A DNA stretch of 63,451 nucleotides, counting the filler, from Pelomyxa schiedti (Eukaryota; Protista; Evosea), in assembly GCA_020536535.1 (NCBI GenBank). It is 12 parts of 12 records of this genome, joined end to end, with 100 filler letters (N's around TTAATTAATTAA, not from the genome) between each part and the next. Parts side by side here need not be neighbours in the genome. Positions count along the whole stretch, not along the records: positions 20,916 to 35,148 come from JAHLWZ010001173.1; 11 more parts are not named here. One strand, written 5' to 3'. Positions 11,401-35,148 of the stretch are shown piece by piece. A program made the translations under genes and the position numbers. Each line of letters begins with the position of its first letter. Positions within the stretch are counted from its first letter, which is position 1. The notes under the pieces were generated by a model, which did not search any database, was not told where the DNA came from, and saw nothing but the letters and a program-made list of their open reading frames with translations.

Positions 11401-11616
11401 ATTACATACGACGTGTGCAAGGAGCACCACTTGGTCGACAGCATCCCGAAGGAAGACTGCTTGTACAGTGTCCCAGCCATCAAAACCTAACAAAAAAAAA
11501 TGCTCTGACGGTGCCTCAACGCAAAAAACCTGACTACATACCTTGCCAACTTGTGACAAAATGTCCGCCTTTTCAGGCGCCGCCGTCGGTTCTGCCTCAG
11601 GCTGTTGACTAGCCAT
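8419..11616 (-). CDS. PH domain + RasGEF_N/CDC25 Ras guanine nucleotide exchange factor
   Basis: N-terminal PH-like MAGTLYKQSSFGMLSTKW; REM IRGGNIYKLVQYLT...DFMQAFLISY; CDC25 HPEELARQIMLME, PPCVPYL, LINFVKY, YDQSLLVE. The 3' end may extend by one more exon. Confidence 0.9.
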
Positions 11617-12047
11617 GCCGTGTACCGAGAGGAATTGTGTTGTTCTCTCCCTGTGTCGTCTTTTGTCGTCTTTTCTTCGCACTCACTTCGGCACCGCACA
11701 CGCGCGCAGGCGTCGCCTTTCGCGGTTGTTTTTGGTTTTTTTTGTGCTCTCGTGTTCCGTTTCCGTTTTCTTTCTCGTGGGGAAAGTGACATTTCAATTA
11801 AATTTTTGTTGTGGGACTTCGCGTATCCGGGATCTGTAAATGGCCTGAGTTGAAGATGATTGAGTTGATGAGGGCCTCAAAATGGAGGTGAAGCTCAACA
11901 CATCACACCAAAGTGGCTTGAATGTATTGCAAGTGTGTTGTCGGTGTTGCATGTGTACATCAATGTTGTTGTGGGGTGGTTGTGTGATTGATTGATTGAT
12001 GCGTTGATGTGTTACTTAGGGTGATGATTGGGGCAAATTGGATCAAA

Positions 12048-13216
12048 CTAGCAGCAATCACTGTTGGTGGAATGAGAGGCTTCTGGGGAGGACGTGTCGA
12101 TTGATACAGAGGGTTGGTGGGAGTGTTGTGGAGAGTGGAGAATGATTTCTGTGTCTTCTAGGTTGACTGGCGTCAATGTTCTGTTAAGAAATGAGTTGTT
12201 TGGTTCATGGTGTGTGGGAGGGTATGTACGGATATAATAGTTCTGATTCAGAATCTTGACACTTGAGAGCTCGGCGTGCCACGCACTCAAATGCCTCACG
12301 AACATTGGTTGCTTCTTTGGCACTTGTCTTGTAAAGTGAGGTCTGGAAAGGGGGTGGTCATTTATACCTCAATAAAGGGAATATCCCCTTTAGATGTGCA
12401 CCATTCCTCAGCAGTTTTTACAGTTATCTTTGGTCATTTGAGAAATTTGTTCTTACTATTAACAGCTCATAATCCAATGGAAAGCGTAATGTGAAAAGGA
12501 AAAACACACCAACCGCTGTTCGGTAAGGTCGGTCTTATTCCCAATAAGCACAAAAGGAAATGTTTCTGGATTTTCCGGCTCACATTGGCTTATGAATGAG
12601 CTGTGCCAATGGTCAAGGTTTTCAAAACTTCGTTGAACGTTCACGTCAAACACGAGGCAGCAGCAATCGGAACCTGAAGTACTTCAGTTCCGTTATCAAC
12701 ACAAGAAATACCTCGAAAAAAGGTAGAACCAAGACTTTGAAACCGTTCCTGACCAGCTGTGTCCCACACCTTAGGTTGTGGTGAACAGTTTCTCATTACC
12801 ATAAATGTAATACCTGGAGAATGCATGTTTGCTCATCGACTACTATTTCCTGCACGGAAAACACAATTTGAGAAGGTTTTTAAGAGTTTATTTACTTGGG
12901 TGTCTACCTTAGAGTGGAAGTCAGCACCAATTGTAGCTTTGTACACTGTAACGAAATGGTCATCCACAAACCTGCATAATTTCGCGTACTCAGTAATTCC
13001 TCACAACATTGGTTCGTTTTTACCGAGTTATCAGTGCCGTTTTCCCAACTCTAACATTGACATATTGTTTAACCGATTTGTGCCACTGAAAAGGGGGAAA
13101 AAAAAAGAGAGAAGACAACGATACCCAGGATCTCCTAGGAGTATTACTTTGAGTAATGGGCGTCTGAACCTGCCTGTTTTTGGCGTAGGTGTGCCGGGTC
13201 CCCTCTCGGACGACAT
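12048..13216 (-). CDS. RAB7: Rab7-like small GTPase
   Basis: [11 protein letters not shown]|[39 protein letters not shown]-terminal DCC* prenylation motif. Includes a 27-nt micro-exon. Confidence 0.9.
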
Positions 13217-13932
13217 GTATGATCCCTCACAGAAGATCTTATATTACAAATAATAATGTTTTTTCTCCTAGTGCGAGTTGGGTGTGGCAACCCGGCACCA
13301 CGATTGGCGATTATTTGTTTTATAATTCGATCATGCGATCTTATGTTTTCGGGGATTTGGATAAGTGATGAAAACAAGGACCCACAATGTTGCCCAAGCG
13401 GTGTCTCTCAACATCCCAGTCAGCACTAGTCAGGTGAGTCCTCTGACCCTTTCATTATCACTGAGGGAATACATTGTACCTAAGTGGTTTATGCGGGGCC
13501 AACAGTTCTCCCGGTCTATCTTTGAGGAGAGAATTATCTGAGTTTGAACCCTCCGGTGGATAGTGGGACACATGCAACCACACAGTTTTTGAGAAAGAAC
13601 GTTTTGTTTTCCACAATTTTTGTAGAAACAATAACACTCATGAGCCGCCCTAAGACAACCAACCTAGCACATGATCGTGCACAGCAAATCCAAATTGGCA
13701 TTCCCTGGGGACTTGTGGTGTCAGTTCACTGCGCCGAAGGAGATGATGCACAGTACTTCCACAGCCGCAGGGGATTTTTTCCGTTTATGGAAAGTCTCTC
13801 ATCAAATTGGGCAACGAAAGCGTGATGCGTGCTGCAGCGGTGGATGCCTTGCTGGCTTTTTAAGCGGAACCGTTTGTCTCTTCTTGGTTGCAACAATAAA
13901 CAAACAACCAAGACAGCAACCAAGCAAACAAC

Positions 13933-15540
13933 ATGCGGTGTGTGATAGCACTGCTTTCCCTCTGTGCTGCATTTGCCCTTGCCACCAAAGGCTGGGGAGA
14001 CCTTTGTTATGGTCGAAGCGGTGATGGAAAATGCGACATGGCGTGCTACACCAGGGATAACTTCTTCGACAAGGGCGACTGCGACGGTACTCGCTCCCTC
14101 ATTGTTTGGGTTTATTGTTTTTTTTTTTCTCTCACTCATACAACAAACAGGCCTCTGCAACCCTGGATGCTATAACAGTTCCATCGGGGACGGCAACTGC
14201 GACTCGTGGTGCATGACCGAGGAGTGCAACTACGACGGCGGGGACTGTGGCGACGGAGGAGTCTGCGGCGACTGGAACTGCCGGGCCGAAGACTGGGGCA
14301 ATGGCGCATGCAACTACGAGTGCGCCAACGCCGAGTGTGCATGGGACGGCGGAGACTGCGGTGCGTCTACTTTCATTTTCATTTTCATTTTCATTTTCAT
14401 TTTCATTTTCATTTTCATTTCTTTCTTTCCTTCTTTCCTCCCTTGCCGTATGAAATTATTATACTTTGGGTTTGGATGTCTAGCTGCGTTGCAAACACTT
14501 TGTGTGCAGTGTTACTCAACTGTGCCCGTCTTTGCACCGTCCAGCTGATTGGCAACGGCTATTGCGACACCATTTGCGAGGCCGAGGAGTGCTTCTGGGA
14601 CGGGTTCGACTGTGAAGACTGGTGCGCAGAGAGTTGCCACGTGACCATGGTGGGCGACGGCCACTGTGACATGCACTCCTGCTACAACGAGGCCTGCAAC
14701 TGGGACGGCGGCGACTGCGACGTCCCGCTCGTGGACTACTGCGACCCCCCCAAGTGCCTCAGGAGCCAGGTTGGTGACGGGCACTGTGACTCCGTCTGCT
14801 TCAACGATTACTGCGACATGGACGGCGGCGACTGTGGTGTGTCCCTTTTTATCAATCTCTCTCTTTCTCTCCCTTGATTATGGATCTGTGTTGTCCGTGT
14901 TGTCTGTGTGTCGGAATCAAGGCTTTTGGCGGGCCTAACACGCACCCTAGATGGCAGTTACTGTGGCCAGATGGATGGTTACAATGGTTACGGTGCCTGG
15001 TATTGCTATGATTCTGCTATTGGTAATAATCACTGCGACGCTCCGTGCAACAATGCGGATTGTGGATATGACGGCGGCGACTGCAACTTTTCGCGCGTGT
15101 TATACATTGCGGAGTTGGTTGATAACACATGCACCGGGGAAGCCCTCACGGTAACTGCTCACTACTGCACAAACGAGAACGATTGGCAGTGTGAGCCGTA
15201 TTGCTCCTCACTGTTCAGTGAGTGTCAACCTGAGAACGTCCTTCAAGGCTGTGCCACTGTGGCTGAATTCGATTCCTTGTTGGACGACTGGTTCAAGGAA
15301 GAGTATGTTCACCCTCTCTGGCATACCTATACTTACTTTTGTGCTCAGGCCAGCATGGACGGCCACTTTCCCTAACGTAGAGTGCGAGGGCACCCCGAGT
15401 TCTATATTCTACTGGACCAACTCTGATTGCATCCTCATCAGAAACAACCTGTGGGGATACATAGAGTGGTCAGCAAAGGGCGTCCGCGTGCCACACATTT
15501 GCACTGACCCCCACTGTGATGACTGCTTTGTCAATCGCGA
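13933..15540 (+). CDS. Secreted/surface LNR (Lin-12/Notch repeat) protein, 3' truncated by gap
   Basis: Signal peptide MRCVIALLSLCAAFALATKG followed by about 7-8 GDGxCDxxCxxxxCxWDGGDC repeats. Confidence 0.85.
14371..14420 (+). repeat. (TTTTCA)8 microsatellite within an intron of the LNR gene
   Basis: Direct reading of the sequence. Confidence 0.95.
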
Positions 15541-20915: not shown

Positions 20916-21309
20916 TGGTACGTTCGGACCAAGTGCGTGAATCATAGCTGAAAAATAGAAAACGTGAGTTTGTGCAGCATAACATCAAACACGTATGGGA
21001 ATGGGTTATTCACTATTAAGCATAATAGATAGCGAAAGTCACACACCCACTGACACCGATTCAACAGACAATCCTTCAATGTAGTCATACTGGGGCCATG
21101 CCAGCCAAACTGAAAAGCACCATCAGGTGGTGTTCGTTAGAAAAGGCAGTAATATAAAAATGTGGCAGAAGGGGGGGGATGCATAATACTGGGGTTATGG
21201 GATATGTACCAGAGTCGTGCTTCTCCCAGTCAGCTGGGAACAAAAAAGACTCACCCCCAAGCAGGCACAACGAAACTACAACTAAAACAGAACAACACGA
21301 CCACATCAT
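20916..21309 (-). CDS. Agmatine deiminase / Porphyromonas-type peptidylarginine deiminase family, 5' fragment with signal peptide
   Basis: Splicing two GT-AG introns gives MMWSCCSVLVVVSLCLLGGESFLFPADWEKHDS|VWLAWPQYDYIEGLSVESVSV|AMIHALGPNV. This matches the family N-terminal PAEWxxHxxxWLxWP motif. Confidence 0.75.
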
Positions 21310-21895
21310 CGCTGGCTGTATTGTCAAAATGATTTTGATCGTCCCAAAACCATGTGACCGGTTTTGGGGTTGATGAACCACAGGGAATCCCAATGGTTCT
21401 GTTGGGAGACACGCAATGATGGGACCATAACAAGGGGTGCCTATGAGATGAATCCACCAGGAAAGGTAAGTTGATACAGGGGGTGATGGCCATTTTGGGA
21501 AAGTGATGCCTTCCGCTGTTTCAACTCAGACCCGTTCAAAACAAAACTGGGAAAAAAAAAAAAAAAAAAATCAAACCAATCGACGACGACCACCGGCACC
21601 GGTACCTACTCAACACCCTGTTTGTTTGTCGCAGTTTGTCGCATGCGGTGGTGGTTTGGGTTGTTTATGGGTCTAGCGGCTGTCTGTTTGTCTTCATCTC
21701 GCACCCCTTTTTTTAAATTGACTCGCGTTTTAGTAAGGCCCCTTTGTTTCACCAAATTTAGGAGGCGCCGATACACCTATAGCAATTAGTGACCTAGGTT
21801 TTTTTTCTATTTAATGTTTTTTTCTTTGGGTTTTTTTTTCCCCAGATCGCTTTGACACTGAATCCTTATTTTATTGTATAGACCTTTCGAAAACA

Positions 21896-24304
21896 ATGGG
21901 TGACGCAACAACACCAGCACCAACAGCAACTCCCGCAGCCCCTGCACAACCACTGCCTCCTGGTTGGAGTGAGAGGTTGGATCCAATATCGGGCAAGAGG
22001 TTTTTTGCCAACCTCATCACCCGCACTTCAACGTGGGAAAGACCCACACAACCAGCAGAGATATTCGCAACTCCTGCCCAAATTGCTGCGTACCAGCAAG
22101 CACTGGCCCAGGCTCAATTGGCCAAGCAACAAGCACTTGCTGCGCAAGCCCAGGCCCAGGCCCAAGCACTGGCGGCCCAAACGCAAGGAGATACGCAGTC
22201 CCAAACTGGTACACAACCAGCAACGGCAGTACCACCAGCAACGACAACAACAACAACTCCCGCTACGCCAGCAACACCAACAACACCCTCCCAGCCTAAT
22301 GAACCAACTCCAACTCCAGCTCCAGCAGCAACCCCCTCTGTGACAGCTCCCTCTGATGCGCCTGTCAGTATTGCTACGCCTTCAATTGAACACCGCACCT
22401 CAACACCAAAACTACTTGAGCCACAACTTACGTCGCCATCAAGCAATGCTCTACAAACCGCTACTCAGGACCCACTGCCAGAGGGTTGGGAAGAACGAAA
22501 ACACCCTGCAAATGGTCGAGTTTATTATGCCAACTTGGTGACAAGGACATCTACTTGGGAAAGACCCAAATTCCCTGCAGCAGCGTACCTGAATGGGAAT
22601 CCAGCTGCCAACCAACCTACAGTAGCGTCGACTACCCAGCCATCTACAACTACCCCCACCACAACCCAATCAGCCCCACAAACAGGGAGTTCCTCCACTT
22701 CAACTCCATCCCTTCCAACGTCACAACCAGATGCGCCTTCATCTGGCACACAACCAGCAATTGTTCCTGCACCAACATCAGAGACATCTGGAATGACAGC
22801 AGCCCAGACTCAGGTATATCTGAACAATTGATACGAATCCATTAATTTCGGTTGCAGGCTATTGGAGAACCACCTGCTTGTGCCCTCTGCCACAAGATTT
22901 CAAAGATTCCACTGGAATGCCCCCTCTGCAAGGGAGTGGCGTGCAAGTATGTTTCAGCTCTTCACTTTCCAGCCTAACAGAGCCAGGGAATGCTTCGAAC
23001 CAGTGGCCACAACAGAATGTCCCTTGTGTCACCAACCTCTTACAGTTGCTCAGTTGAAGGACAAAATGCCCCCAAATTGGGAAGAACGATTTGATAATAC
23101 TTCACAGAAGGTAACACAATTTTTTTAGACTGCATTGACTCCAACTAGACATACTTTGCCAACGTTGTAACAAGGGCGGCAGTATGGGATAGACCAAAAT
23201 ATCGTATTTTTTTCCTTTCCCCCCCTTCTTACTTCTCACTTCTTTCTAGCTGTACCAGTGTCACCACTGGTCACTCATAGTGAATTAGCGGCATCTTCGA
23301 CCATCTCTACTCCTTCTCAAACGGCAGAGCCGACCAACACAAATAGCACGACCACCACTGCAGCAACATCAACCACTACTTCATCAACCACACCAAGTAC
23401 GGCCGACACAGCTGAGAGAACAGCTACCCCAGCAAACTCTACCACCGCTAGTTCTGCCGCAGCCGTACCCGGCTCTCCTTTAAGTGCAAGTGCTGCCCAG
23501 ATAATAATCCCAAATACCGCACCTAAACCAGGTGTGCGCAAATTTGTTACAGTTGGAGATGGTGCTGTAGGCAAGGTACTTTTGTCTTTTTATAGTCTAT
23601 TTATTTCCTCACCTCCAAAAGACATGCTTGCTCATCTCCTACACAAAAAATGCTTTTCCTGAAGAATATGTCCCAACTGTATTTGACAATTATTCATGCA
23701 ATATAATGCACGACGGGAAGGGCTATAATGTTGGTCTTTGGGATACTGCCGGACAGGAAGAGTATGTGTAATGCCTAGTTAAATGTCTTCTAATTCCCAA
23801 AAAGATATGACCGCTTGAGGCCACTCAGTTGATTATTTTCACTTTTATTCATTTCCTCTAACATTCTCATTACACAGGTTACCCACACACCGATCTTTTC
23901 TTCCTTTGCTACAGTATTGTGAACCCATCATCATTGGACAACTGCCGCGAAAAATGGAATCCCGAGATTACGCATTACTCCCCCGATGCACACAGAATTC
24001 TTGTCGGCACCAAAAAGGATCTTCGAAACGATCCCGCGATTGTAGCAGCTTTATTGGCTGAAAAGAAGCAACACCCTGTCACTGCTGACGAAGGCCTCAA
24101 AGTTGCCAAAGAACTAGGATGCGTCCGACATCATGGTAATAAAAACTCCTTCTACTTTTCTTCTCAAAACTAAGCTACTGTACAGAATGCAGTGCCCGCA
24201 CCCAAGAAGGCATTGCCGGTCTCTTCAATGAGGCAATAAAAATATGCCTTTCTCCCCCCTCTGCAGTCAACCCTGCCAGAAAGAAGAAATGCTGTATCCT
24301 GTAA
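21896..24304 (+). CDS. WW-WW-RING-like-WW protein fused to a C-terminal Rac/Rho GTPase
   Basis: WW motifs [24 protein letters not shown] and MPPNWEE..VWDRP. Cys cluster CALC..CPLC..C|KEC..CPLC. GTPase VGDGAVGK|[31 protein letters not shown], and CAAX end KKKCCIL* (TAA 24302-24304). Confidence 0.9.
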
Positions 24305-24377
24305 AAAAAAAGAGAATAATCTAACACTCACAACAGCCTTATAACCTCAACAAAATCATCCACTCTCTTACTACATT

Positions 24378-27300
24378 CTACCAAGCTAGTATTACACACA
24401 AAGAAGCAGCCAATACCACACTGAGCAACTGAGCACTTGCCTGCACACTCCTGCTTATGCTTATGCTGTCCTCACTGTCACTGCCTCTGCCCTTGTTCTC
24501 CCTCTGAGCCAGTGATGGCAGGAACATAATGGCTGAGGTGCCAATCATGTAGCTCCCATAGTTGTCCCCCCAGAACTGTGTCACTGAGGGGTCCTTGGGG
24601 CTCACTTGGCTGGCAAATCCCCAGCAGGCCATGCAGCCCCCAATGTCACTGGGGTCACTGGTCAGTTCATAGAGGGAAACAATGTCACTGGGAGTGAGGG
24701 CTCTGTCATACACAGCCACGTTGTCCAGTGTCCCATTCATATCTGGGAAGAGTTAATAATAATAAAGGGAAAAACGGGAAGGAGAAGATAAATAAAAAGC
24801 ACACATGTCCAGTGAGTGGAGCCTATCCAGAAGAAAACAATAGGCACCCATTGGGGAATAAATGTTCCAGAGTTGGTGCCGGTAGCAGAAACAACAGTTC
24901 CATCGACGTAGATAAGAACCTGTGTTTGCCGGAAATGGTTAAATAAGAATTAGGAAAGTGATGGGTACCTGTGAAGTGTTGGAAGTGATGGCAATGTGGT
25001 GCCACTCCCCGGCCAAGAGAGAACTAGTTGATACAGAGCAAGTATAAACAACCGTGGTATCGTTCTTTTCTACTAGTACACATAACTGAAAGGATGTTTG
25101 GATAAAAGTTGGAAGAGCGGAAACTCCAACCTGTCCAGATGGATTCTTCCTAAGAAGCACAAAGTCAGTATAGCCATTTCCTTGCCATAGCTTAATTCCC
25201 GTCAGTTAACGGGTTAGAATTAGCATAAGGCCTTACAGTAAGTAAATCCACAGTGAGCGGATCACCATTATCCAGCTTTACCCACAGTGATACAGAGGCT
25301 CCTGACTCCCCGAACAATGGAAGGGAAAATGATAGCTTCTCTGTATTTTCAACATGGATTCCTCCACCAGAGATACCAGAACCCACCCAAGTGGTTCCGG
25401 CAGAGAGTGTCATTTTGGTGCCTTTGCCAGTGTCATCGTAGACAAATGGCACGGTCAAAGCCTTCCAAAGTGACTGCAACACCATACTTGTATCTTGATT
25501 GTACTTGGACCATAGTCCATACCCGCCGGTTGGATAGCTTCCACTTAATTCCCAAGGTGAATATCCAAAATGCGGTCTCCCAGAATAATCAACTCTGTAC
25601 CTGAAGGAAATGAGAATAGTGGCCATCGTAATCTACATGGTACCATCCATTTGTGCCATCCATGAAGTTCGTGAATAGTGGGTAAGTCCAATTGCGGTTG
25701 AACACACGGTAAATAACCTGTGTACACATAAGCATCCTCTTTTGCATGAAAATCCTCACCTCATTTGTCAGGCCGATATAAATATTATCAGGAAATGTTG
25801 ATGTGAGATAGGCTCTGCATTCATCAAATGTATAGAAAACGTGACAGAAGCGTCTAGCGTGACTGATATCCCATCCCACATTTTTTCCAGGTTTTATTGG
25901 GATCCCAAGGTCGGCCGGGTTATAACCTGTTTGACGGAAGTAAAACTTAAAAGTACTTCGCTGTTACGAAATTTGTTGGTTTACCTTCGGTAACATCTTC
26001 AGTGTAATTTGAATAACGGTAGTCAAAGTAGTCATCCCACACCCCTAGATCAAAGTTGATAGCCTAGAGCAGATGAACATCGTATTGCGTAAATATTTCT
26101 TAGTACCTCAACCGCATTTCCTTGAAGTCGGTCAAAAGAGAGGAGGTAAACCTACCCTCAATAAAAATTCTTCCCATCTCAATGAAGTCACTGAAGACCT
26201 GGTGAGGAAGATATCAGTATTTACTTGAGTTCCGGGTGAACTCACCTGGGCAATAGATTCATTGATGTTGATTACATCTGGAGCTATGCGGTATGTTGAA
26301 AGTGTATAAATTGCTCCAGAAATGACCCACATATCAGTATCGGAAACGGGGGAGGTATGAGATGCTGAAACCTGCAACTCGAACCTTCAACTGTGTAACT
26401 CAGTGCTAAACTGTATTTTACTACTTACCCAGAGTAACCACTTTGCCACCCTTTGCATATTATACTTCCTACAGTCGTCCAAACAGGCTTCACCCAAGCT
26501 TCCAGTGTAAACCCTGCCCAACCTTCCATGTTGAGAGTGACAGAGTTGGGAATAACAATATGGCTATCAATTCCATTGAAACCAAGGCATTTTCCAGCCC
26601 AGCACATATTGGAAGGTAAATAAACAGTGTTGTGCGGAGTACCTAGGACTTGGTGTGACGAAAGTCCATGAAGGTCAAAAATGAACCAGTGTTATTGTTT
26701 CCAGAAGAATCTAATATAGCACCAGAGGATTCATCATCCTCAAATTTCCAGCTCCCAGCCAGTCCTGCATCGATTTCTTCACCGGAATATCGGGAATCCA
26801 CCTCTTCTTGTGACAAGACCCTATTGTAGATATATACTTCATCAATAGAGCCTAACATTGGGAATGGGAAAAGGATACAATAGTAGAGTCGAATACCATT
26901 AAAATATGCCCAACTACCGGAGATATATCGCCCAATGTACAACGAGCCGGAATCTGGAACTATAATCCCTGGGATGTGTAGACGTGTATGACTGGTCCCA
27001 TTCACATAGAAATTCACGTTTGAACCATCATAGGATACAACAACGTGGTGCCAATTTCCCAATGTGAGCTCCGAGGTTCCACCTCGCAGGTATGTGTAAC
27101 TGCTAGGGCCAGTGTTTATGCGGGAAACAGGTTGAGCCCCAACCCCAAGCCTGCTGAGAATCGAGGAAGAATATGTAGTCCCAGTTCCGTGCCTGAAGGA
27201 GGTGAACCAGATTTCTGAACAGGGAATGCAAACGTTGTTCCGAGGTGTATCCACTTGTACAGTTCATCAAACCATACAACCGTGGCATACTTAGATACGA

Positions 27301-28144
27301 AAGTCGAAAAAGGTTCTTGGTTTTGAAGGCCCATAGATGCTATTCCATATAAAACTTCAGCTAGTATGTATACAAATTGGCTTGATACAAGGAGAACTTC
27401 TTGATCTGCTGAAGCCGGCCAATTAAGGCAGTTTGGAGTCTCACACAACCACTCCTATATTTGTATTACTAAACGGTATGATTCCAACCGAAAGAGAAAC
27501 CCAACGACCTTGTAACCATATGTAGTATTCAGGTATGGTTCCGCTGAAAGAAGAACCTCTGCCAAATCACCTAGAAGTGTATCGTTCTCCACCATTCGAA
27601 TGTACTTGCTAGTATGACAGTCGATTATACTTTTTACACAAGAGAACACCACACCAAAAATTATTCAGCATCAATTCAGCGTCATACAGAGAGTATGGGT
27701 TCCCCTTCTGAAAAAAAAATCAAAGGTTGGTTTAACAAATTCAACATTTTGAGTAACATTCATATATACGTGCATGTGTGTCTATTTATACGACCAACTA
27801 AAACTAAGCACGGCAGCCAACAACGGACCAACCTCCAGTTGTCCCACAATTAAGTCGACGTAGTACTGCTTTGAGGTTTTCCAGGCGTCCAACAGTGCGG
27901 CCTCGGCGTCGCGGGACAGAGCCCCCTCGGCACCGCGGGCCTGGTCCTCGTCGTCAGGCCGGCAGTCCCTGGGGCAGTTGACGCGGTTCTCGACCCCGTC
28001 GCACCACCCGTCCTCGACGCAGTAGTACCCCGGCGACGTCGTGACACCCCCACCCACGCATACTGCATTGAGATGCACCAAAAGAAGAGCAACGAGTAGT
28101 AGAACCCCGGTCGTTGTCGTCGCGGCAACACCGACGCCCTTCAT
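24378..28144 (-). CDS. Large secreted, probably GPI-anchored protein with multiple LamG/concanavalin-A-like domains
   Basis: Signal peptide (MKGVG...LLVALLLVHLNA), CxxDGWCDGVENRVNCPRDC, WHHVVVSYDG, FNGxIDEVYIYNRVLS, FTLEAWVKP, GTLDNVAVYDRAL, and a hydrophobic C-terminus. Confidence 0.8.
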
Positions 28145-28442
28145 GAACCGAACCGATGCTGTTCGTATCTGCGTGTCCTTTTTGGTTTTTGTTGTTGTTG
28201 GTTTTTTTGTTCCAAAAAGGAAAAGAAAAATGACAGTGATCTTGGAAGATTGATGATTATGGTCAATCAGATGCAAGCATGGGGTTTGTGGTGAAGAATT
28301 GTCACAATGAGGTTATTGTTGTACAGTGGCAGATTAAGTTCTGGCAACTTCATCTTTGGTTTGAAGTGGAGGTGTGAAATTCCAAAGGATATTGGTTAAA
28401 GTGTGAATGGTGAATTTTACATGTGTTCAGTAGCATTTTTCT

Positions 28443-29332
28443 TCATGATGTACTATAAGGTTTGGGTAAGTGGGATGGTATTTTTAGTGTGACTGTACCT
28501 CGAGTTGATGGACAGTGGATCAAATGCCTTACTTGTATTGGTAGCAACGTGGCGTGCTATTGAGGTATTCATTACTGCTGTAGGTTTGGTGGAATGAGGT
28601 GGAGGATCGCCACTTTGTGTATGGGGCTGTGTCTTTGGCGTTGGTTGGTTGGGCTGTGGCTGCTGGGTACCATGCTGCTCAAGGCTTGGTTTGGTGATTG
28701 GTATTACAAGAAGCTTCTTTGAAAATATATCGTTGTCACACCACAGCTTATTCATTTTTTTCAACACGGCTACCTGTGATGTAAAATTAAGAAAATGGTG
28801 CTGCTGCGCCACACAACAACAATAAGAAGAAAAAGAAGTCCGTTGATTATAATTTGTATTGTATATCTTACAATAAACTCCTATGAGAAATAAAGTAACT
28901 GAGGGAGGATAGATAGCATACAGATACACCGTATCTGAGGGATATTCCCTGCAGTGTGTCAGTTTTCTCAACGCAGTGGTAATGTTGGTACAATCCCGAC
29001 TGTGTCTCGACCATGGCTAGGCTGGCCCCCGTGTGGTGGTGACCGTGATTATGGGACGCCGATCCGCCCACGGCGTCGTCGTTGTCGTTCCCATAATTGT
29101 CATCCGAGTGCGCGTAGCCGGTCAGGCCCAGGCCCGGGCCGGCCCCGACAACCGCAGTGGCCGCCGTAACAGCCCGTACATCTTCGGCTACTTGGAAGTG
29201 AGGCGCGTGGTGATTATGGGATGCGGTGGTTGGCGATGATGACGACGAGGACGAGGACGAGAACCGGTGGAATGTGTCGTAGTCGTTGTCTTCCTTGTCG
29301 AGGTCGTATCGCACGAATGGGTTGCCACTCAT
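28443..29332 (-). CDS. LysM domain protein (LysMD-like)
   Basis: HCVEKTDTLQGISLRYGVS|VAVLKKMNKL..DIFSKKLLVIP across one intron. The exact 3' end is uncertain. Confidence 0.85.
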
Positions 29333-29383
29333 GGTGTAGTTGGTCTGTGTAGATGCCGGGGACGTTCGTATCGTTCCGATTAC

Positions 29384-29527
29384 GCAAGCGAACAATGATC
29401 GATCCCCAGATCTGAGTTCCCGGTGAGGGCTGTATCCTCAGACCGGATTCCCCCTGCGGATCTAGTGGAGATGGAGAACTCAGAGCATGTCTTTCGCTGC
29501 TGGGTTGAGGACTTGCAAACTTTTTTT
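29384..29527 (+). ncRNA. Candidate structured RNA (nested stems, three-way junction, T-run)
   Basis: GCAAG/CTTGC, CCCAG/CTGGG, perfect TCTGAGTTC/GAACTCAGA and CCGG-TGAGGG/TCCTCA-CCGG stems, followed by T8. Confidence 0.35.
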
Positions 29528-29660
29528 GGAAGCGAAAGCACTAGAAGGGAAATTTGAATTAAACTTTTCTTTTCGTTTTCACGTTTTAAACAAAACAGCA
29601 AGCAACAGAACGCCGAGAGCGACACCGGAAGATCCCAAGATCCAATACACGCTTCAATAA

Positions 29661-31199
29661 ATGGAGAAGTTACACGCACTTGTTGCACAACTGCAGGCTG
29701 TGATGGCCAACCGAGACGTCGCTCTTTACAACCACGATTTCTTGCGCACATGGGATAAGACCCCCAACGAAATTTCTGCTGTAATGTTGGTCAACATGGT
29801 ACGTTGGGGGTTCATGAACCTTTCTTTTTTTTAACAAAAATATTTATTTATACAGTAACGTGATTTTCTCTTTTTTTATTGTTTGAAATGAGCACGGTCT
29901 TTTGCAGAATAAACCCACTTAATGTAGATTCTCCAAGAGATGTACAAGCTTAACATCTCCGCTAAAGTGTTCAACGGTGGTCTTGCTGTTTCCAACTTCA
30001 GGGATAAGAGCACCCGCACCCGGTTCTCTTTCGCTTTTGCCTGTGATATGCTGGGTCTTTCAGTAGCGGATATGGACGAGACCAAGTCCCAGATTTCTCA
30101 CGGAGAGACCGTGCGCGAGACTGCCGCCATGATTTCTTTCCTGACCCAGGCAATCGGCATTAGGGACGATATTTTCCTTGGCGAGGGTACTTTGTTCTCC
30201 CCAAATTTTCCACACCATTTTCTAACAGTCCCGTCATAGGACATAGGTATCAGAAGGAGGTTTCCGACACCGTAGCCCAGGCTTTCCATGAGGGTGTTCT
30301 TCCTCAAATCCCCGCTGTCGTAAATCTTCAATGCGACGAGGACCATCCCACCCAAGCAATGGCTGATATGTCTCACCTTATTGAGCACTTTGGTGGTGTT
30401 GAAAACCTTCGCGGAAAGAAGTTGGTCATGAGCTGGGCATACAGCCCATCGTACGGCAAGCCACTGTCCGTGCCACAAGGCGTCATTGGTATCATACCCT
30501 GCAACGCCATTACCACTAACTAAATTCAACAGGACTTATGAGCCGATTCGGCATGAACATCGTCTTAGCCCATCCCGAGGGATACGATCTCCTCCCTGAG
30601 ATTGTTGACATTGCTCGCAAGAACTCCGTTGCCAGTGGTGGTTCGTTCGCGATTTCCAACAACATGAGTGAGGCATTCGTTGGTGCTGATGTTGTTTACC
30701 CCAAGAGCTGGGCTCCAATCCCTATTATGCAGGAGCGCTGCAGGCTCCTTCATGCCGGAAAGGGCAGTGGCCCAGAAATGGCTGCTCTTGAAAAGAGAGG
30801 TTTCCTTCCCCTTACAACGAAATCCGTTCTTACACCCCAAAAAGGTTTGGAAGAGAGTGCTCGCTTCGTTGACTGGCAGTGCACAGCCGAGAAGATGGCA
30901 GTAACCAAGGCAGGATCCGCTCTGTACATGCACTGCCTCCCAGCCGATATCACCGGCGTCAATTGCCGCACTGGTGAGGTTTCTCAGGACGTCTTTGAGA
31001 GGTACCGCATCCAAACCTACAAGGAGGCCGGACACAAGCCCTACGTCATTGCCGCCATGATTCTCCTGTCAAGGTACAAACAACAAACAGTCACAAACAC
31101 CTACTACTCTCAACTCTAACTGTAACGCACAGGTTCCCCGATGCCGCCGGTACCCTCCGCAAGGCCATCGAACGCAACACACCCCGCATGCTCCTCTAA
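29661..31199 (+). CDS. ygeW: YgeW-family (knotted) carbamoyltransferase, intron-containing
   Basis: DFLRTWDKT, FRDKSTRTRFSF, SQISHGETVRETAAMISF, GIRDDIFLG, VNLQCDEDHPTQAMAD, WAYSPSYGKPLSVPQG, YPKSW, LYMHCLPADI, YKEAGHKPYVIAAMIL: all closely match bacterial YgeW. Five GT-AG introns. Confidence 0.93.
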
Positions 31200-31423
31200 G
31201 CCCCGAAAACACCAAAAAAACAAGTGATTTCCTTTTCCTCCAATCGACTCACTTCTCGTAACTTGCATTTTTCGTTTTACGGTTTTACAAAACAAACACA
31301 GGTTTTCCCGCTATTTTAACACACCACCAAAGAGCAACCCACACCGATTCGTTGGGTAAATAGACAATAATAACAGGGGGGTGGGGTGGTGTATTATTTT
31401 CTCGACAGTAATAACAACAGCAG

Positions 31424-32934
31424 ATGAACACGAGCAGCAGTAGTGCTAGTAGTAGTTCGACGAGTTTGAGCGGGGGGCCATTGGCGTCGTTGCACAAGGC
31501 GTGCCGCACTGGCGACGTGGCCGCCGTGAAGAAAATACTCGCCGCGAATGGCGCCGACAAGCTCGACGTGAACGGCCGCGACTCGGACGGGTGTGTAGCC
31601 CCGGAACCATTGTGGGATGTGTGTGAATTGTGAATTGTGGTTTGCGGTTTTTTCCTTGTTTTTGTATTGGCAGATACATAAGCACACAGTGTCAATATGT
31701 TGTTTGCTTTTGGTTTTTTTGTGCTTCCGACAATGTGGGGAAGTTCTTAACTTCTTTTATAAAACCTGTGACTCTAATATTTTCTTCATTGAGTGAAAGA
31801 ACTAAAAGATATTTCATAGGTATACCCCTCTGTGTGTGGCTTCAAGGTTTGGATATGTGGAGGTGGTGAAGGCACTATTGAATGCCCCTCCCCACGTTCC
31901 AGATATAAATGTGACCATATTTACTTGCTATTCCTATACTAAGAGATATTATAATTTTAGGCCCAGACCACAAGAGGGTGGACATCGTTATCGCTGGCCA
32001 TTTGCAGCCACCAGGACCACGTTGCTGAACTGCTCCTTAAAACTGCTGGTGTTGATGTTAATGCCTCCAAGCCACTATGGTGTGCTTGCATGGAAGGAAG
32101 GACCCACGTCGTAAAGATTTTACTAGCATGCCCCGCAATTGATGTGAACCAAGCCTCAACCGGTGATGAAGAAACACCTCTCACTGTTGCCTGTGAATGG
32201 GGGCATAAGGAGATAGTCCGGTTACTGCTGGAAGCACCCTCTATTGACACAAACAAAGCCCGGAAGCGTGATGGAGCAACTCCGCTGGTTGCTGCAATAC
32301 TAAAGGATCACCTTGACATCGCCAAACTTGTTTCCGACCATGGGAGTACAGTCCCGCCGGAATGGGAGCAACGAGTTGAATACAAGCTCGGAAAGGAGAA
32401 GTATGCTAAACTATGTAAAACCCACGCCAAAGCAAGTATGAGTCCTGTGTAATAATTGTTCACTCACCTTACTTTGACTCAGGCAAGTCCGGTTCCGCAT
32501 CGACTACAACTTCCACAACGACTTCTTCAACAACCACAACAACCTCAACAACCTCAACTACTGTGACCGAGCCGGAACCTGAAAAGAAACCGTCCAAGGA
32601 AGAGGCTCCCCACAGCACTGGAAAAGCTGAGCCGGAATCAGACCCAAAAGCCGAGAAAGCTGAACACAAGCACCATAAGGAACATTCCACTGAACCCCAT
32701 CATTCCGGAACTCAGGAATCTTCCACAGGTGATGAATCACCTGCACCAGTTGCAGCCACAATGACCGCAACAACAACAACCACAACCACTGAGGGTGATC
32801 ATGGTGATGCTAGCAAGGGAACTCCCCCTAGTACTACAACTTCAAGTAATACCTCAGTCAAGGCAGGAGTATCGCCATTCCTATCAAACTGTCTGCCTAT
32901 TTGCCACTGTGACATTTGCCCATTCAAGTTCTAA
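31424..32934 (+). CDS. Ankyrin-repeat protein with Thr/Ser-rich tail
   Basis: LHKACRTGDV, TPLCVASRFG, PLWCACMEG, TPLTVACEWG, TPLVAA. The 3' end is approximate. Confidence 0.85.
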
Positions 32935-33268
32935 ACAAGAAAAAACAAGGTGTTTGTATTGGGTCAGAGAATTTTTCTCCAATTTTCAGTGCCGGTAATG
33001 TTACTCTTCAGGTTGAGGGGTAACGCTGGCAACAGCCCTTGGCAACAAACAACACCAAGTGAGACCTTAGGGGAAAACCAATCATTGATGAAATTCGGCG
33101 AAAAAAGAGAAAAACGCTACTTGTAACACCGCCTTGTCGCAACTTGGAAAAAAAATGGCCTAAGCGGCTTTGGTAAAGACCGGAGCAATTATTTAATTCA
33201 GCGTTGTAATAACCTGCACAACAAACAAAAAAACCCAAAACCACAAAACAACAACAAACAAAGAAACG

Positions 33269-34576
33269 ATGTCAGACGAACCAGCACCACCCACGAACAA
33301 AAAACCAAGGTTCAACAACACCTCCACATCCACATTCAAGCCAGCAGTAACTACCACAACCCCAACCACTTCGACTCCCAAACCAACGTGGCTTGGTGCC
33401 CTCGGCCTCCAGACTGGCCAGTGGGCATGCGACCAATTTGGTGCTCTCTTGATTGGAACCCACTCGGCGAGGTGCGGGAGATATTCACAGTTGGCGAGGG
33501 TGTTTGGGGGAACCGACGCGGTGAGGCACTTGTGGGACTGGATGTTGGAATCCAAGAGGGTGTTTGTCGTGGATGCACTTGTGGGTTCTGGGAATGACAG
33601 GAATGGTCGTCGTGGAGTGCTGCGCACTGTCAGGATTGAGCTGCTGCCGCTGTTGTTGGGAGTCACCAGCCTGTGTGTGGTGAGGGAGGCCCAGAGGGGC
33701 ATATGGCTTGTAAGAAAGCAATTCGGCTGTGAGCCGGAAATGGGGTGGGCACTGAACGACGCCACGTTCCTGAATCGAGATCATGGCGAATGTTTTGGAG
33801 TCTCCTCTGGTGTGAACAGGCAGTGGTCGGTGAGGTGGAACGCACTTGCATTATTTGTGACAAACTTGGCAGAGAAGGGGACCAGGCCTGCTGCAATTCC
33901 TCTTCCTCGCTGTTACCGCAGCATCCAATCCATTAACCCGAGCAAAGTAATCCCATCACAGGCAGTGATGCTAACGAGCTGTCAACAACAAACAGACCTG
34001 GTCGTCATTGATATCGCCAAAACCTGGGAAACAAAAACACTGCAGGTGGTGAGCACAACGCGCTGCAAATTTCCACCTGTCTGTGATCCCCAGAATGAGG
34101 AGGATGATGATGAGCCAGTGTCTGTCATTGTGATGGAGAACAAGCGTGGGCAAAACGTGTTCATTGTTGAGATTTTCCATGCTGGCTCTGGCAGATTTGT
34201 TTTTTATGTGCAGTCTGATGGCACTGCTGAGATTCTTTATCATGTGCCGAACTGGTACAAGCGCCCACTTGTGTCACAGTTGAGCAAGTCACTGTTCTCA
34301 GTCTATTATCCATCTCGTGCACAACCGTCGGATGACTGGGGGAGTGTACTTAACATCCTGGACTGCAATGACATCTCCGCGGTGGGAGTGAGAGGGATAA
34401 AGCGTGTGAAGAGGTACCTTGCAGGTGGTGGACTTGTTTTTACAGTGGATGAATCAGACAGGAAGAGCCTGACAGTGATTGAAGCTTCGTCAGGTGTTGC
34501 CTTTGCCTCTGTCAGCTTCCTTGCTCCTGGCAACAACCTTGTGGATCTCGATAGAACCACCTCTTTTTTTTCTTGA
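33269..34576 (+). CDS. Intronless member of the 'QFxA..RCG' family
   Basis: 435-aa ORF; ACDQFGALLIGTHSARCGRYS, RHLWDWM, LLLGV, NRQW, IDIAKTWETKTLQV. Confidence 0.8.
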   Translation: MSDEPAPPTNKKPRFNNTSTSTFKPAVTTTTPTTSTPKPTWLGALGLQTGQWACDQFGALLIGTHSARCGRYSQLARVFGGTDAVRHLWDWMLESKRVFVVDALVGSGNDRNGRRGVLRTVRIELLPLLLGVTSLCVVREAQRGIWLVRKQFGCEPEMGWALNDATFLNRDHGECFGVSSGVNRQWSVRWNALALFVTNLAEKGTRPAAIPLPRCYRSIQSINPSKVIPSQAVMLTSCQQQTDLVVIDIAKTWETKTLQVVSTTRCKFPPVCDPQNEEDDDEPVSVIVMENKRGQNVFIVEIFHAGSGRFVFYVQSDGTAEILYHVPNWYKRPLVSQLSKSLFSVYYPSRAQPSDDWGSVLNILDCNDISAVGVRGIKRVKRYLAGGGLVFTVDESDRKSLTVIEASSGVAFASVSFLAPGNNLVDLDRTTSFFS

Positions 34577-34780
34577 AACAACACACACCTGGCACTCCCT
34601 TCGACCAAGACCACTGTAAGACAAACCCCTCTTGATGTCTAAAGTCGGTAAAGAGGAAAAGGATCGTTCTCTTATTTTCTGCTAATATGTGTGGTGATGT
34701 GACGGTGCTGATAGCACAAACGGTAGAAGGGAGCAGCATTGCTGGCCATCCTAAGAAAAAAAAGCTGGTGTGTGCCCACA

Positions 34781-35148
34781 TTAGGGGAAAGCCAATCATT
34801 GATGTGATTCGGCGAAGCGCGGAAAACTAGCTAGTTGTAACACGGCTTTGTTACAACTTACAACTTGAAAAAAAAAATGGCCCAAGCGACTTTGCTAAAG
34901 ACTGGAGCAATTATTTAATAAAGGTTGTAGCATTAACCACAAGAAAGAAACAACAAACAAAGAAACGATGTCAGACGAACCAGCACCACCCACGAACAAA
35001 AAGCCAAGGTTCAACAACGCCACAACGTCCACATCCACATTCAAGCCAGCAGTAACTACCACAACCCCAACCACTTCGACTCCCAAACCAACGTGGCTTG
35101 GTGCCCTCGGCCTCCAGACTGGCCAGTGGGCATGCGACCAATTTGGTG
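34781..35148 (+). repeat. Tandem duplicate of 33067-33443: upstream region plus 5' CDS (ATG 34968) of the family gene, cut by contig end
   Basis: Near-identical coding start with a 6-nt insertion and a silent change; the upstream region is more diverged. Confidence 0.9.

Follow-up and report, generated by a model that had tools for sequence, protein, structure and literature searches.

Does an anaerobic amoeba carry, and perhaps use, a bacterial enzyme of oxygen-free purine breakdown? This question is raised by a gene at positions 29661-31199 (+ strand) of a 63,451-nt stretch of Pelomyxa schiedti DNA (assembly GCA_020536535.1), the whole of which we call the window. In a preliminary description of the window, a full-length YgeW-type transcarbamylase gene with five short introns was reported here and proposed to be laterally acquired and to serve anaerobic urate and purine catabolism. 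We find that the gene is real and resides in the nuclear genome of P. schiedti, that it is transcribed and its introns are correctly removed, and that its product, according to family models and phylogeny, is a true YgeW-family ('knotted') carbamoyltransferase and not an ornithine carbamoyltransferase (OTC) or a member of the AOTC or PTC families. The explanation that accounts best for the data, and that we consider rather probable, is a laterally acquired nuclear YgeW which likely carries out phosphorolysis of a ureido-amino acid, by homology with Escherichia coli YgeW. As GenBank already names the protein YgeW, what is new is not that the gene exists but what it means. As an account of the gene, the preliminary description was right about identity and residence, but it missed both the existing GenBank name and the clade of homologues that spans the Archamoebae.

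Gene structure, transcript and protein family

Translation of the exons gave an uninterrupted frame of 402 codons, distributed over six exons and encoding a protein of 402 amino acids. The features of the gene are listed below; X3, X4 and X8 are RNA or transcript contigs and L081 is an orthologue, all described further on.

29608..31239 (+): minimum extent of the mRNA, with a 5' untranslated region of ~53 nt and a 3' untranslated region of at least 40 nt (RNA contigs X4 and X3)
29661..29798 (+): exon 1, coding from the ATG at 29661, residues 1-46; match to the N-terminal end of the YgeW models weak, though specific
29799..29927 (+): intron 1, 129 nt, phase 0, GTACGT..TAG; absent from X3 and X4; intron of the same position and phase in L081
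29928..30186 (+): exon 2, residues 47-133, with the STRTR carbamoyl-phosphate motif at 30009-30023; exon alone scores 135 and 132 bits with the YgeW models
30187..30239 (+): intron 2, 53 nt, phase 1, GTACTT..TAG; absent from X3, X4 and X8; intron of the same position and phase in L081
30240..30488 (+): exon 3, with HPTQ at 30344-30355 and the YgeW-typical loop WAYSPSYGKPLSVPQG at 30434-30481; YgeW models 141 and 140 bits
30489..30532 (+): intron 3, 44 nt, phase 1, GTATCA..CAG; absent from X3, X4 and X8; intron of the same position and phase in L081
30533..30799 (+): exon 4; YgeW models 111 and 106 bits
30800..30844 (+): intron 4, 45 nt, phase 1, in frame and stop-free; absent from X3, X4 and X8; no counterpart in L081
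30845..31073 (+): exon 5, with the HCLP motif at 30931-30942; YgeW models 118 and 110 bits
31074..31132 (+): intron 5, 59 nt, phase 2, GTACAA..CAG; absent from X3, X4 and X8; no counterpart in L081
31133..31199 (+): exon 6, coding part, TAA stop at 31197-31199; C-terminus aligns with the ends of the YgeW models and of PDB entry 2yfk

All five introns are of the GT..AG type. Their G+C content is 37%, against 53% in the coding sequence, and a CTAAC-like branch site occurs near the 3' end of three of the five (introns 2, 3 and 5). Intron 4 coincides with a gap in the alignment to E. coli YgeW (3q98). Because it is in frame and free of stop codons it was not provable from the genomic sequence alone, and the RNA contigs settled it. 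Contig X3 (1285 nt), from a single-cell RNA library, spans 29625-31239 with 0 mismatches and lacks exactly the five introns. All five joints recur in contigs of another RNA library prepared from this sample. RNA contig X4, likewise without the five introns and with 0 mismatches, begins at 29608, directly after the template-switch oligo remnant GTACATGGG, which makes this position the likely 5' end of the mRNA. The same transcript in record L089 has the 402-codon reading frame intact. The locus was found unspliced on a 7994-nt contig of run X1, whose library type is unrecorded and which may represent the source assembly's own data. Public single-cell RNA data thus bear out the gene and its five short introns at every joint.

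The spliced form of the ygeW transcript was also encountered in run X8, which is labelled 'bee metagenome' and was guessed to be DNA. It covers 29966-31194 with 0 mismatches and four of the five joints. Carried-over RNA or cDNA, or a wrong library label, seems a better account of this than an organism living with bees.

The spliced model is identical at every residue to the GenBank entry 'knotted carbamoyltransferase YgeW [Pelomyxa schiedti]' (P0132). Family and database searches were performed with the single exons first and then with P0132 as query. For every exon of at least 75 amino acids YgeW was the best match (105-141 bits), the next family reaching at most 54 bits. The full protein passed the cut-offs of both YgeW equivalog models, with 605.2 bits for NF005538 (cut-off 453) and 589 bits for TIGR03316 (cut-off 500). 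It stayed below the curated cut-offs of OTC (120.8 vs. 280.85), AOTC (128.8 vs. 288), PTC (100.7 vs. 500) and ATC (62.5 vs. 236.95); the cut-offs of the OTC models range from 281 to 559, and P0132 scored at most 121 bits on all of them. The closest solved structures in the PDB were 2yfk (3.4e-150) and 3q98 (1.8e-149), and the domain superfamily is OTCace_N + OTCace. In a phylogenetic tree the YgeW clade, including the window protein, stood apart from E. coli ArgI and PyrB with 100% support in the Shimodaira-Hasegawa-like approximate likelihood ratio test (SH-aLRT).

The family motifs STRTR, HPTQ and HCLP are located at residues 74, 168 and 334. Compared with 79 bacterial YgeWs, the protein keeps 93 of the 94 invariant columns and 136 of the 140 near-invariant ones. 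The models, the tree and the invariant columns agree with the earlier assignment to a full-length YgeW-type transcarbamylase, and both motifs cited for it, WAYSPSYGKPLSVPQG and HCLP(ADI) from 30931, are present. The N-terminus aligns from residue 2-4 of the YgeW models, with no extension over the bacterial relatives. Since an N-terminal targeting extension is lacking, the protein is probably cytosolic. From the ~56% full-length identity to the 3q98 and 2yfk chains we infer a trefoil-knotted fold.

Homologues and origin of the gene

Relatives of the protein abound in bacteria: of 600 stretches that matched the pattern in bacterial and archaeal genomes, 597 encode one. Full-length identity to bacterial proteins was at most 62.5%, with a median of 58.5%. 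The orthologue L081 is a complete protein of 402 amino acids with 82.5% identity, and its gene contains three introns at the codon positions and phases of window introns 1-3. It was first found by a word search with an exon piece, which returned a fragment of 74% identity on a metagenome contig of 497 kb. The gene calls on this contig are fragmented and include ankyrin and EF-Tu-family proteins; the EF-1alpha-like gene there is a divergent paralogue. The ratio of nonsynonymous to synonymous substitution rates (dN/dS) between the window gene and L081 was ~0.07, with dS near saturation, which shows the gene, as judged from its codons, to be under strong purifying selection.

A third homologue with introns, L086, is interrupted twice, at positions other than those of the window gene. 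Using its long last exon as query, a series of proteins of 398-406 amino acids was retrieved, 62-86% identical to the window protein. Most of these are encoded on contigs of ~1.3 kb, consistent with single transcripts, and for homologue P0137 only single-gene transcripts were found as source contigs. The series includes the Mastigamoeba balamuthi protein m51a1_g3730 (P0130), which scored 600 and 584 bits with the YgeW equivalog models and 127 bits with the OTC model. All four clade homologues that were tested on the YgeW models passed.

In a careful tree, the 16 eukaryote-type sequences were separated by a single split from 67 bacterial rows, with an ultrafast bootstrap value of 98 and SH-aLRT of 100; the Pelomyxa subgroup within it received 99/99 support. 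Independent proof of eukaryotic origin is available for four of the 16 members, through introns in three and a EukProt label in one. An asparagine that is present in all 67 bacterial sequences (N304 of E. coli YgeW) is replaced by serine in 14 of the 16 clade members. In the window protein this is residue 309 (codon at ~30856-30858), and in these alignments serine at this site is a marker of the clade. When the tree was rooted with ArgI and PyrB after the addition of L086, the outgroup, with its very long branches, attached to the eukaryotic clade. We judged this to be long-branch attraction and therefore used unrooted trees.

One clade member, P0136, is encoded without introns at 5004-6215 of L090 (Logan ERR10753951) and is 70% identical to the window protein. 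Its gene has 62% G+C and lies inside a 6.8-kb contig of 44% G+C with only fragmentary gene calls.

By these comparisons ygeW defines a clade that extends across the Archamoebae and is not a one-off. The gene was probably acquired from bacteria by lateral transfer, a single event before the split between Pelomyxa and Mastigamoeba being the simplest reading; such an early date is probable because the clade includes M. balamuthi and environmental relatives. The spliceosomal introns were gained after the transfer. The restricted eukaryote-type clade (98/100) and the introns are thus in keeping with the earlier proposal of a laterally acquired bacterial-type gene, the donor lineage aside. Bacterial metabolic genes are common in Archamoebae, among them those for hydrogenase, PFO-related enzymes, the NIF system and methionine gamma-lyase (PMC8136499), and with ygeW a known enzyme family would gain a new member in this transfer-rich eukaryotic lineage.

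A further eukaryotic homologue was found in Streblomastix strix. The protein annotated 'Ornithine transcarbamylase, partial' (L083:2-595, SNRW01000813.1) is a YgeW, with 61% identity over the C-terminal half. Its frame contains TAA, TAA and TAG in frame and ends with TGA, and the first TAA aligns with a glutamine that is invariant in all 81 other sequences. Since in-frame TAA and TAG fit the known oxymonad genetic code, the gene is nuclear. The S. strix protein keeps the bacterial asparagine at the position of E. coli N304. Quick trees placed it with the amoebal sequences (support 61-94); the careful tree did not, and only 30% of its bootstrap trees showed the grouping. With so unstable a placement, neither a single eukaryotic origin including oxymonads nor an independent transfer is shown by the trees.

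Function of the amoebal enzyme and candidate partners

In bacteria, YgeW acts after HyuA in the reductive breakdown of uric acid. It splits a ureido group off 2,3-diureidopropionate by phosphorolysis, and the carbamoyl phosphate so produced can be used to form ATP (PMC12507026, PMC12990295). This phosphorolysis has been established only for the E. coli and Clostridium enzymes (PMC12507026, PMC12990295). The pathway was worked out only in 2023-2025, and according to a commentary of 2025 it is confined to anaerobic bacteria. In 80 bacterial loci, the commonest neighbours of ygeW were ygeY (53), xdhD-like (34), ssnA-like (26), carbamate kinase (26), hyuA-like (21) and ygeX (15) genes. These neighbours and the published biochemistry fit the statement in the preliminary description that bacterial ygeW belongs to an anaerobic urate and purine cluster and releases carbamoyl phosphate.

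For the amoebal YgeW, the most probable reaction by homology with the E. coli enzyme would be the splitting of the ureido group from a ureido-amino acid with phosphate. The bacterial counterpart uses 2,3-diureidopropionate, derived from uric acid. Carbamoyl phosphate would be released, and carbamate kinase could convert it to ATP, CO2 and ammonia. We favor the same chemistry because the family residues are almost completely conserved and because the gene is expressed and under purifying selection.

Names that could belong to partner enzymes occur in a published P. schiedti gene table (PMC10579272, supplement 3), in which the following are listed by name only: xanthine dehydrogenase (four entries, Pelo_13746, Pelo_13022, Pelo_4906 and Pelo_3762), NAD+ dihydropyrimidine dehydrogenase (two), dihydropyrimidinase (one) and guanine deaminase (two). 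Homologues of XdhD, YgfK/UacX, HyuA and SsnA would receive just such names from automatic annotation, and the entries could be mis-named pathway members. Other candidate genes in P. schiedti are Pelo_2925, Pelo_9352, Pelo_6298, Pelo_13468 and Pelo_13198. The same table contains a separate OTC (Pelo_8046), selenophosphate synthetase, molybdenum-cofactor enzymes and a beta-alanine/aminoisobutyrate transaminase; beta-ureidopropionase is not in it. For M. balamuthi, arginine deiminase, a genuine OTC and carbamate kinase have been reported (PMC5052871), and as its YgeW was found here, YgeW and carbamate kinase coexist in this amoeba.

Several observations weigh against a laterally acquired enzyme with the bacterial function. 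The trees, with their 67 bacterial rows, resolved neither a bacterial donor nor the direction. The serine at residue 309 replaces a residue that is invariant in bacteria. Even in bacteria the substrate is not fully settled, two studies from 2025 disagreeing over which ureido group, the one at position 2 or at position 3, is removed. No pathway partner genes are present on the 14-kb window contig or beside the orthologue L081; such absence of clustering says little about the presence of a pathway, as clustering is not expected in a eukaryote. Finally, carbamate kinase, YgeY and YgeX (diaminopropionate ammonia-lyase) are not in the P. schiedti table, from which the ygeW gene itself is also missing.

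The preliminary description went further and suggested that the host gains ATP from purines without oxygen. In its full form this would mean that Archamoebae run the whole reductive uric-acid pathway, with an XdhD-type reductase, YgfK/UacX, SsnA, HyuA, YgeW, YgeY and YgeX, and form ATP via carbamate kinase. YgeW is the signature carbamoyltransferase of this pathway and the commonest neighbours of bacterial ygeW are pathway genes. The table names fit the labels expected for four of the other enzymes, next to selenophosphate synthetase and molybdenum-cofactor enzymes, and M. balamuthi has the same YgeW together with carbamate kinase. Yet the candidate partners are names in a table, three of the required enzymes are not among them, and no partner gene is clustered with ygeW. 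Moreover, an ordinary eukaryotic xanthine dehydrogenase and dihydropyrimidinase could be present in Amoebozoa by vertical descent. We regard the complete pathway as a possible but doubtful extension. The related proposal that free-living Archamoebae (Pelomyxa, Mastigamoeba and uncultured relatives) have a working reductive uric-acid or ureido-acid fermentation built from bacterial genes, with substrate-level ATP formation from YgeW to carbamate kinase, is similarly speculative and on present data unlikely.

Part of the route might lie outside the host. A Candidatus Syntrophus symbiont of P. schiedti has pucA/pucD-type xanthine dehydrogenase subunits and a D-aminoacylase (PMC10579272, supplement 5). 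The latter belongs to the family of UacY, the hydrolytic alternative to YgeW, so that amoeba and symbiont might divide the processing of purines or ureido acids between them.

The amoebal enzyme could also act on another ureido compound, for example N-carbamoyl-beta-alanine from reductive pyrimidine breakdown, in which case it would take the place of a missing beta-ureidopropionase, and the carbamoyl group would be conserved in the form of carbamoyl phosphate. The P. schiedti table, with an NAD-type dihydropyrimidine dehydrogenase, dihydropyrimidinase and the beta-alanine/aminoisobutyrate transaminase but no beta-ureidopropionase, would suit such a role, and the clade-wide exchange of asparagine for serine could mark a shift in specificity. 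The 136 of 140 near-invariant columns that are kept point to unchanged chemistry, however, no YgeW has been shown to use such substrates, and the table may be incomplete. We consider this role improbable, and retain phosphorolysis of a ureido-amino acid as the preferred function.

An ordinary ornithine or putrescine carbamoyltransferase of the arginine or agmatine deiminase route is suggested by database labels, the M. balamuthi protein being 'putative ornithine carbamoyltransferase' in EukProt and the S. strix fragment 'Ornithine transcarbamylase' in GenBank. It is hardly credible in view of the OTC, PTC and AOTC scores far under the cut-offs, the position of ArgI and PyrB outside the fully supported YgeW clade, and the separate OTC in both M. 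balamuthi and P. schiedti. The model scores and the tree with ArgI and PyrB led us to reject this identity at the family level, and with it a grouping with ordinary OTCs. The labels of the Mastigamoeba and Streblomastix proteins should accordingly be corrected to YgeW, which bears on arginine-deiminase pathways inferred from gene lists.

Genomic setting and comparison with known systems

P. schiedti, confirmed here as the anaerobic protist host named in the preliminary description, is a free-living archamoeba packed with prokaryotic symbionts (PMC10579272), and it is therefore the introns and the gene linkage that exclude contamination. The possibility that bacterial or endosymbiont DNA contaminated the single-cell assembly, prompted by these symbionts and by a family that is otherwise bacterial, has virtually no probability left and was rejected, given five GT..AG introns that are spliced out in RNA, one contig that links the gene to WW/Ras, laminin-G, LysM and ankyrin genes, intron positions common to L081 on its 497-kb contig, and bacterial proteins of at most 62.5% identity.

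On the contig (JAHLWZ010001173.1; window positions 20916-35148, 14,233 nt) the NCBI gene calls comprise a WW+Ras protein, a 953-residue laminin-G protein, a LysM protein, the carbamoyltransferase, a 394-residue ankyrin protein and an orphan. The eukaryotic LysM and ankyrin flanks noted earlier are confirmed by these calls:

28443..29332 (-): upstream neighbour, gene of a LysM-domain protein of 231 amino acids (NCBI gene call with PF01476; L088 6783-7672, offset 21660)
31424..32934 (+): downstream neighbour, gene of an ankyrin-repeat protein of 394 amino acids (NCBI gene call, L088 9764-11274; Ank_2 and Ank matches on the open reading frame 32090-32449)

The gene at 21890-24304 (+) is called by NCBI as a single gene for a protein of 685 amino acids with two WW domains, a long Thr/Pro/Ser-rich low-complexity linker and a Ras/Roc-type GTPase domain, an unusual domain combination. 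At 33269-34576 (+) lies a member of a P. schiedti-specific orphan family (Pelo_16717, with Pelo_16554 at 70% and Pelo_18348 at 33% identity); the window copy is without a Pfam domain. A twin contig, JAHLWZ010001145.1 (L087, 16,347 nt), is 99.6% identical to the window contig over 12.9 kb; its genes follow the same order, and its YgeW protein does not differ. The two are probably alleles or a redundancy of the single-cell assembly and not a duplicated second locus. On the twin contig the orphan family is represented by tandem paralogues at 11609-12916 and 13600-14854.

In the literature searched, YgeW in a eukaryote is not mentioned, nor does the gene appear in the main text of the genome papers on Pelomyxa, Mastigamoeba and Preaxostyla. 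Where this literature describes the YgeW pathway, it does so as bacterial only, in line with the remark in the preliminary description that an anaerobic purine route is not known to be established in eukaryotes. The conservation and expression of YgeW and its ancient acquisition across a clade of anaerobic amoebae suggest that eukaryotes have taken over at least the energy-conserving step of reductive uric-acid breakdown. If the complete pathway were present, it would be the first oxygen-free catabolism of the purine ring in a eukaryote, and the P. schiedti proteins named xanthine dehydrogenase, NAD-type dihydropyrimidine dehydrogenase, dihydropyrimidinase and guanine deaminase would really be homologues of XdhD, YgfK/UacX, HyuA and SsnA. 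An entry point is offered by the short list of candidate partners that can be named in two amoebae with sequenced genomes, one of them, M. balamuthi, being amenable to axenic culture.

The closest characterized relative is E. coli YgeW (PDB 3Q98), which has 396 residues against 402 in the amoebal protein and is 56% identical over 394 residues. The STRTR, HPxQ and HCLP motifs and the loop WAYSPSYGKPLSVPQG are kept between the amoebal protein, the E. coli enzyme and the YgeW-type enzyme of Enterococcus faecalis (2YFK). The amoebal gene differs from that of E. coli in being eukaryotic and nuclear, with five introns and without an operon containing ygeX, ygeY, hyuA and yqeA, and in encoding serine at the site of N304 in most members of the clade.

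The UacY protein of Clostridioides difficile, a D-aminoacylase-type hydrolase, performs the same step, removal of a ureido group from 2,3-diureidopropionate. UacY has an unrelated fold and conserves no energy in the hydrolysis, whereas the amoeba has the energy-conserving YgeW type. The citrulline-based carbamoyltransferase and carbamate kinase route (PMC5052871) shares with the proposed one the OTCace_N + OTCace superfamily and the lifestyle of the host, as well as the proposed logic in which ureido phosphorolysis yields carbamoyl phosphate and then ATP via carbamate kinase. It differs in enzyme family and has a separate origin, and the expected substrate of the amoebal YgeW is a ureido derivative of 2,3-diaminopropionate instead of citrulline. 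Like the other bacterial genes transferred into Archamoebae, ygeW is a metabolic gene fixed in anaerobic amoebae that later acquired introns and is found in both Mastigamoeba and Pelomyxa (PMC8136499); unlike them, it is not listed or discussed in the literature searched.

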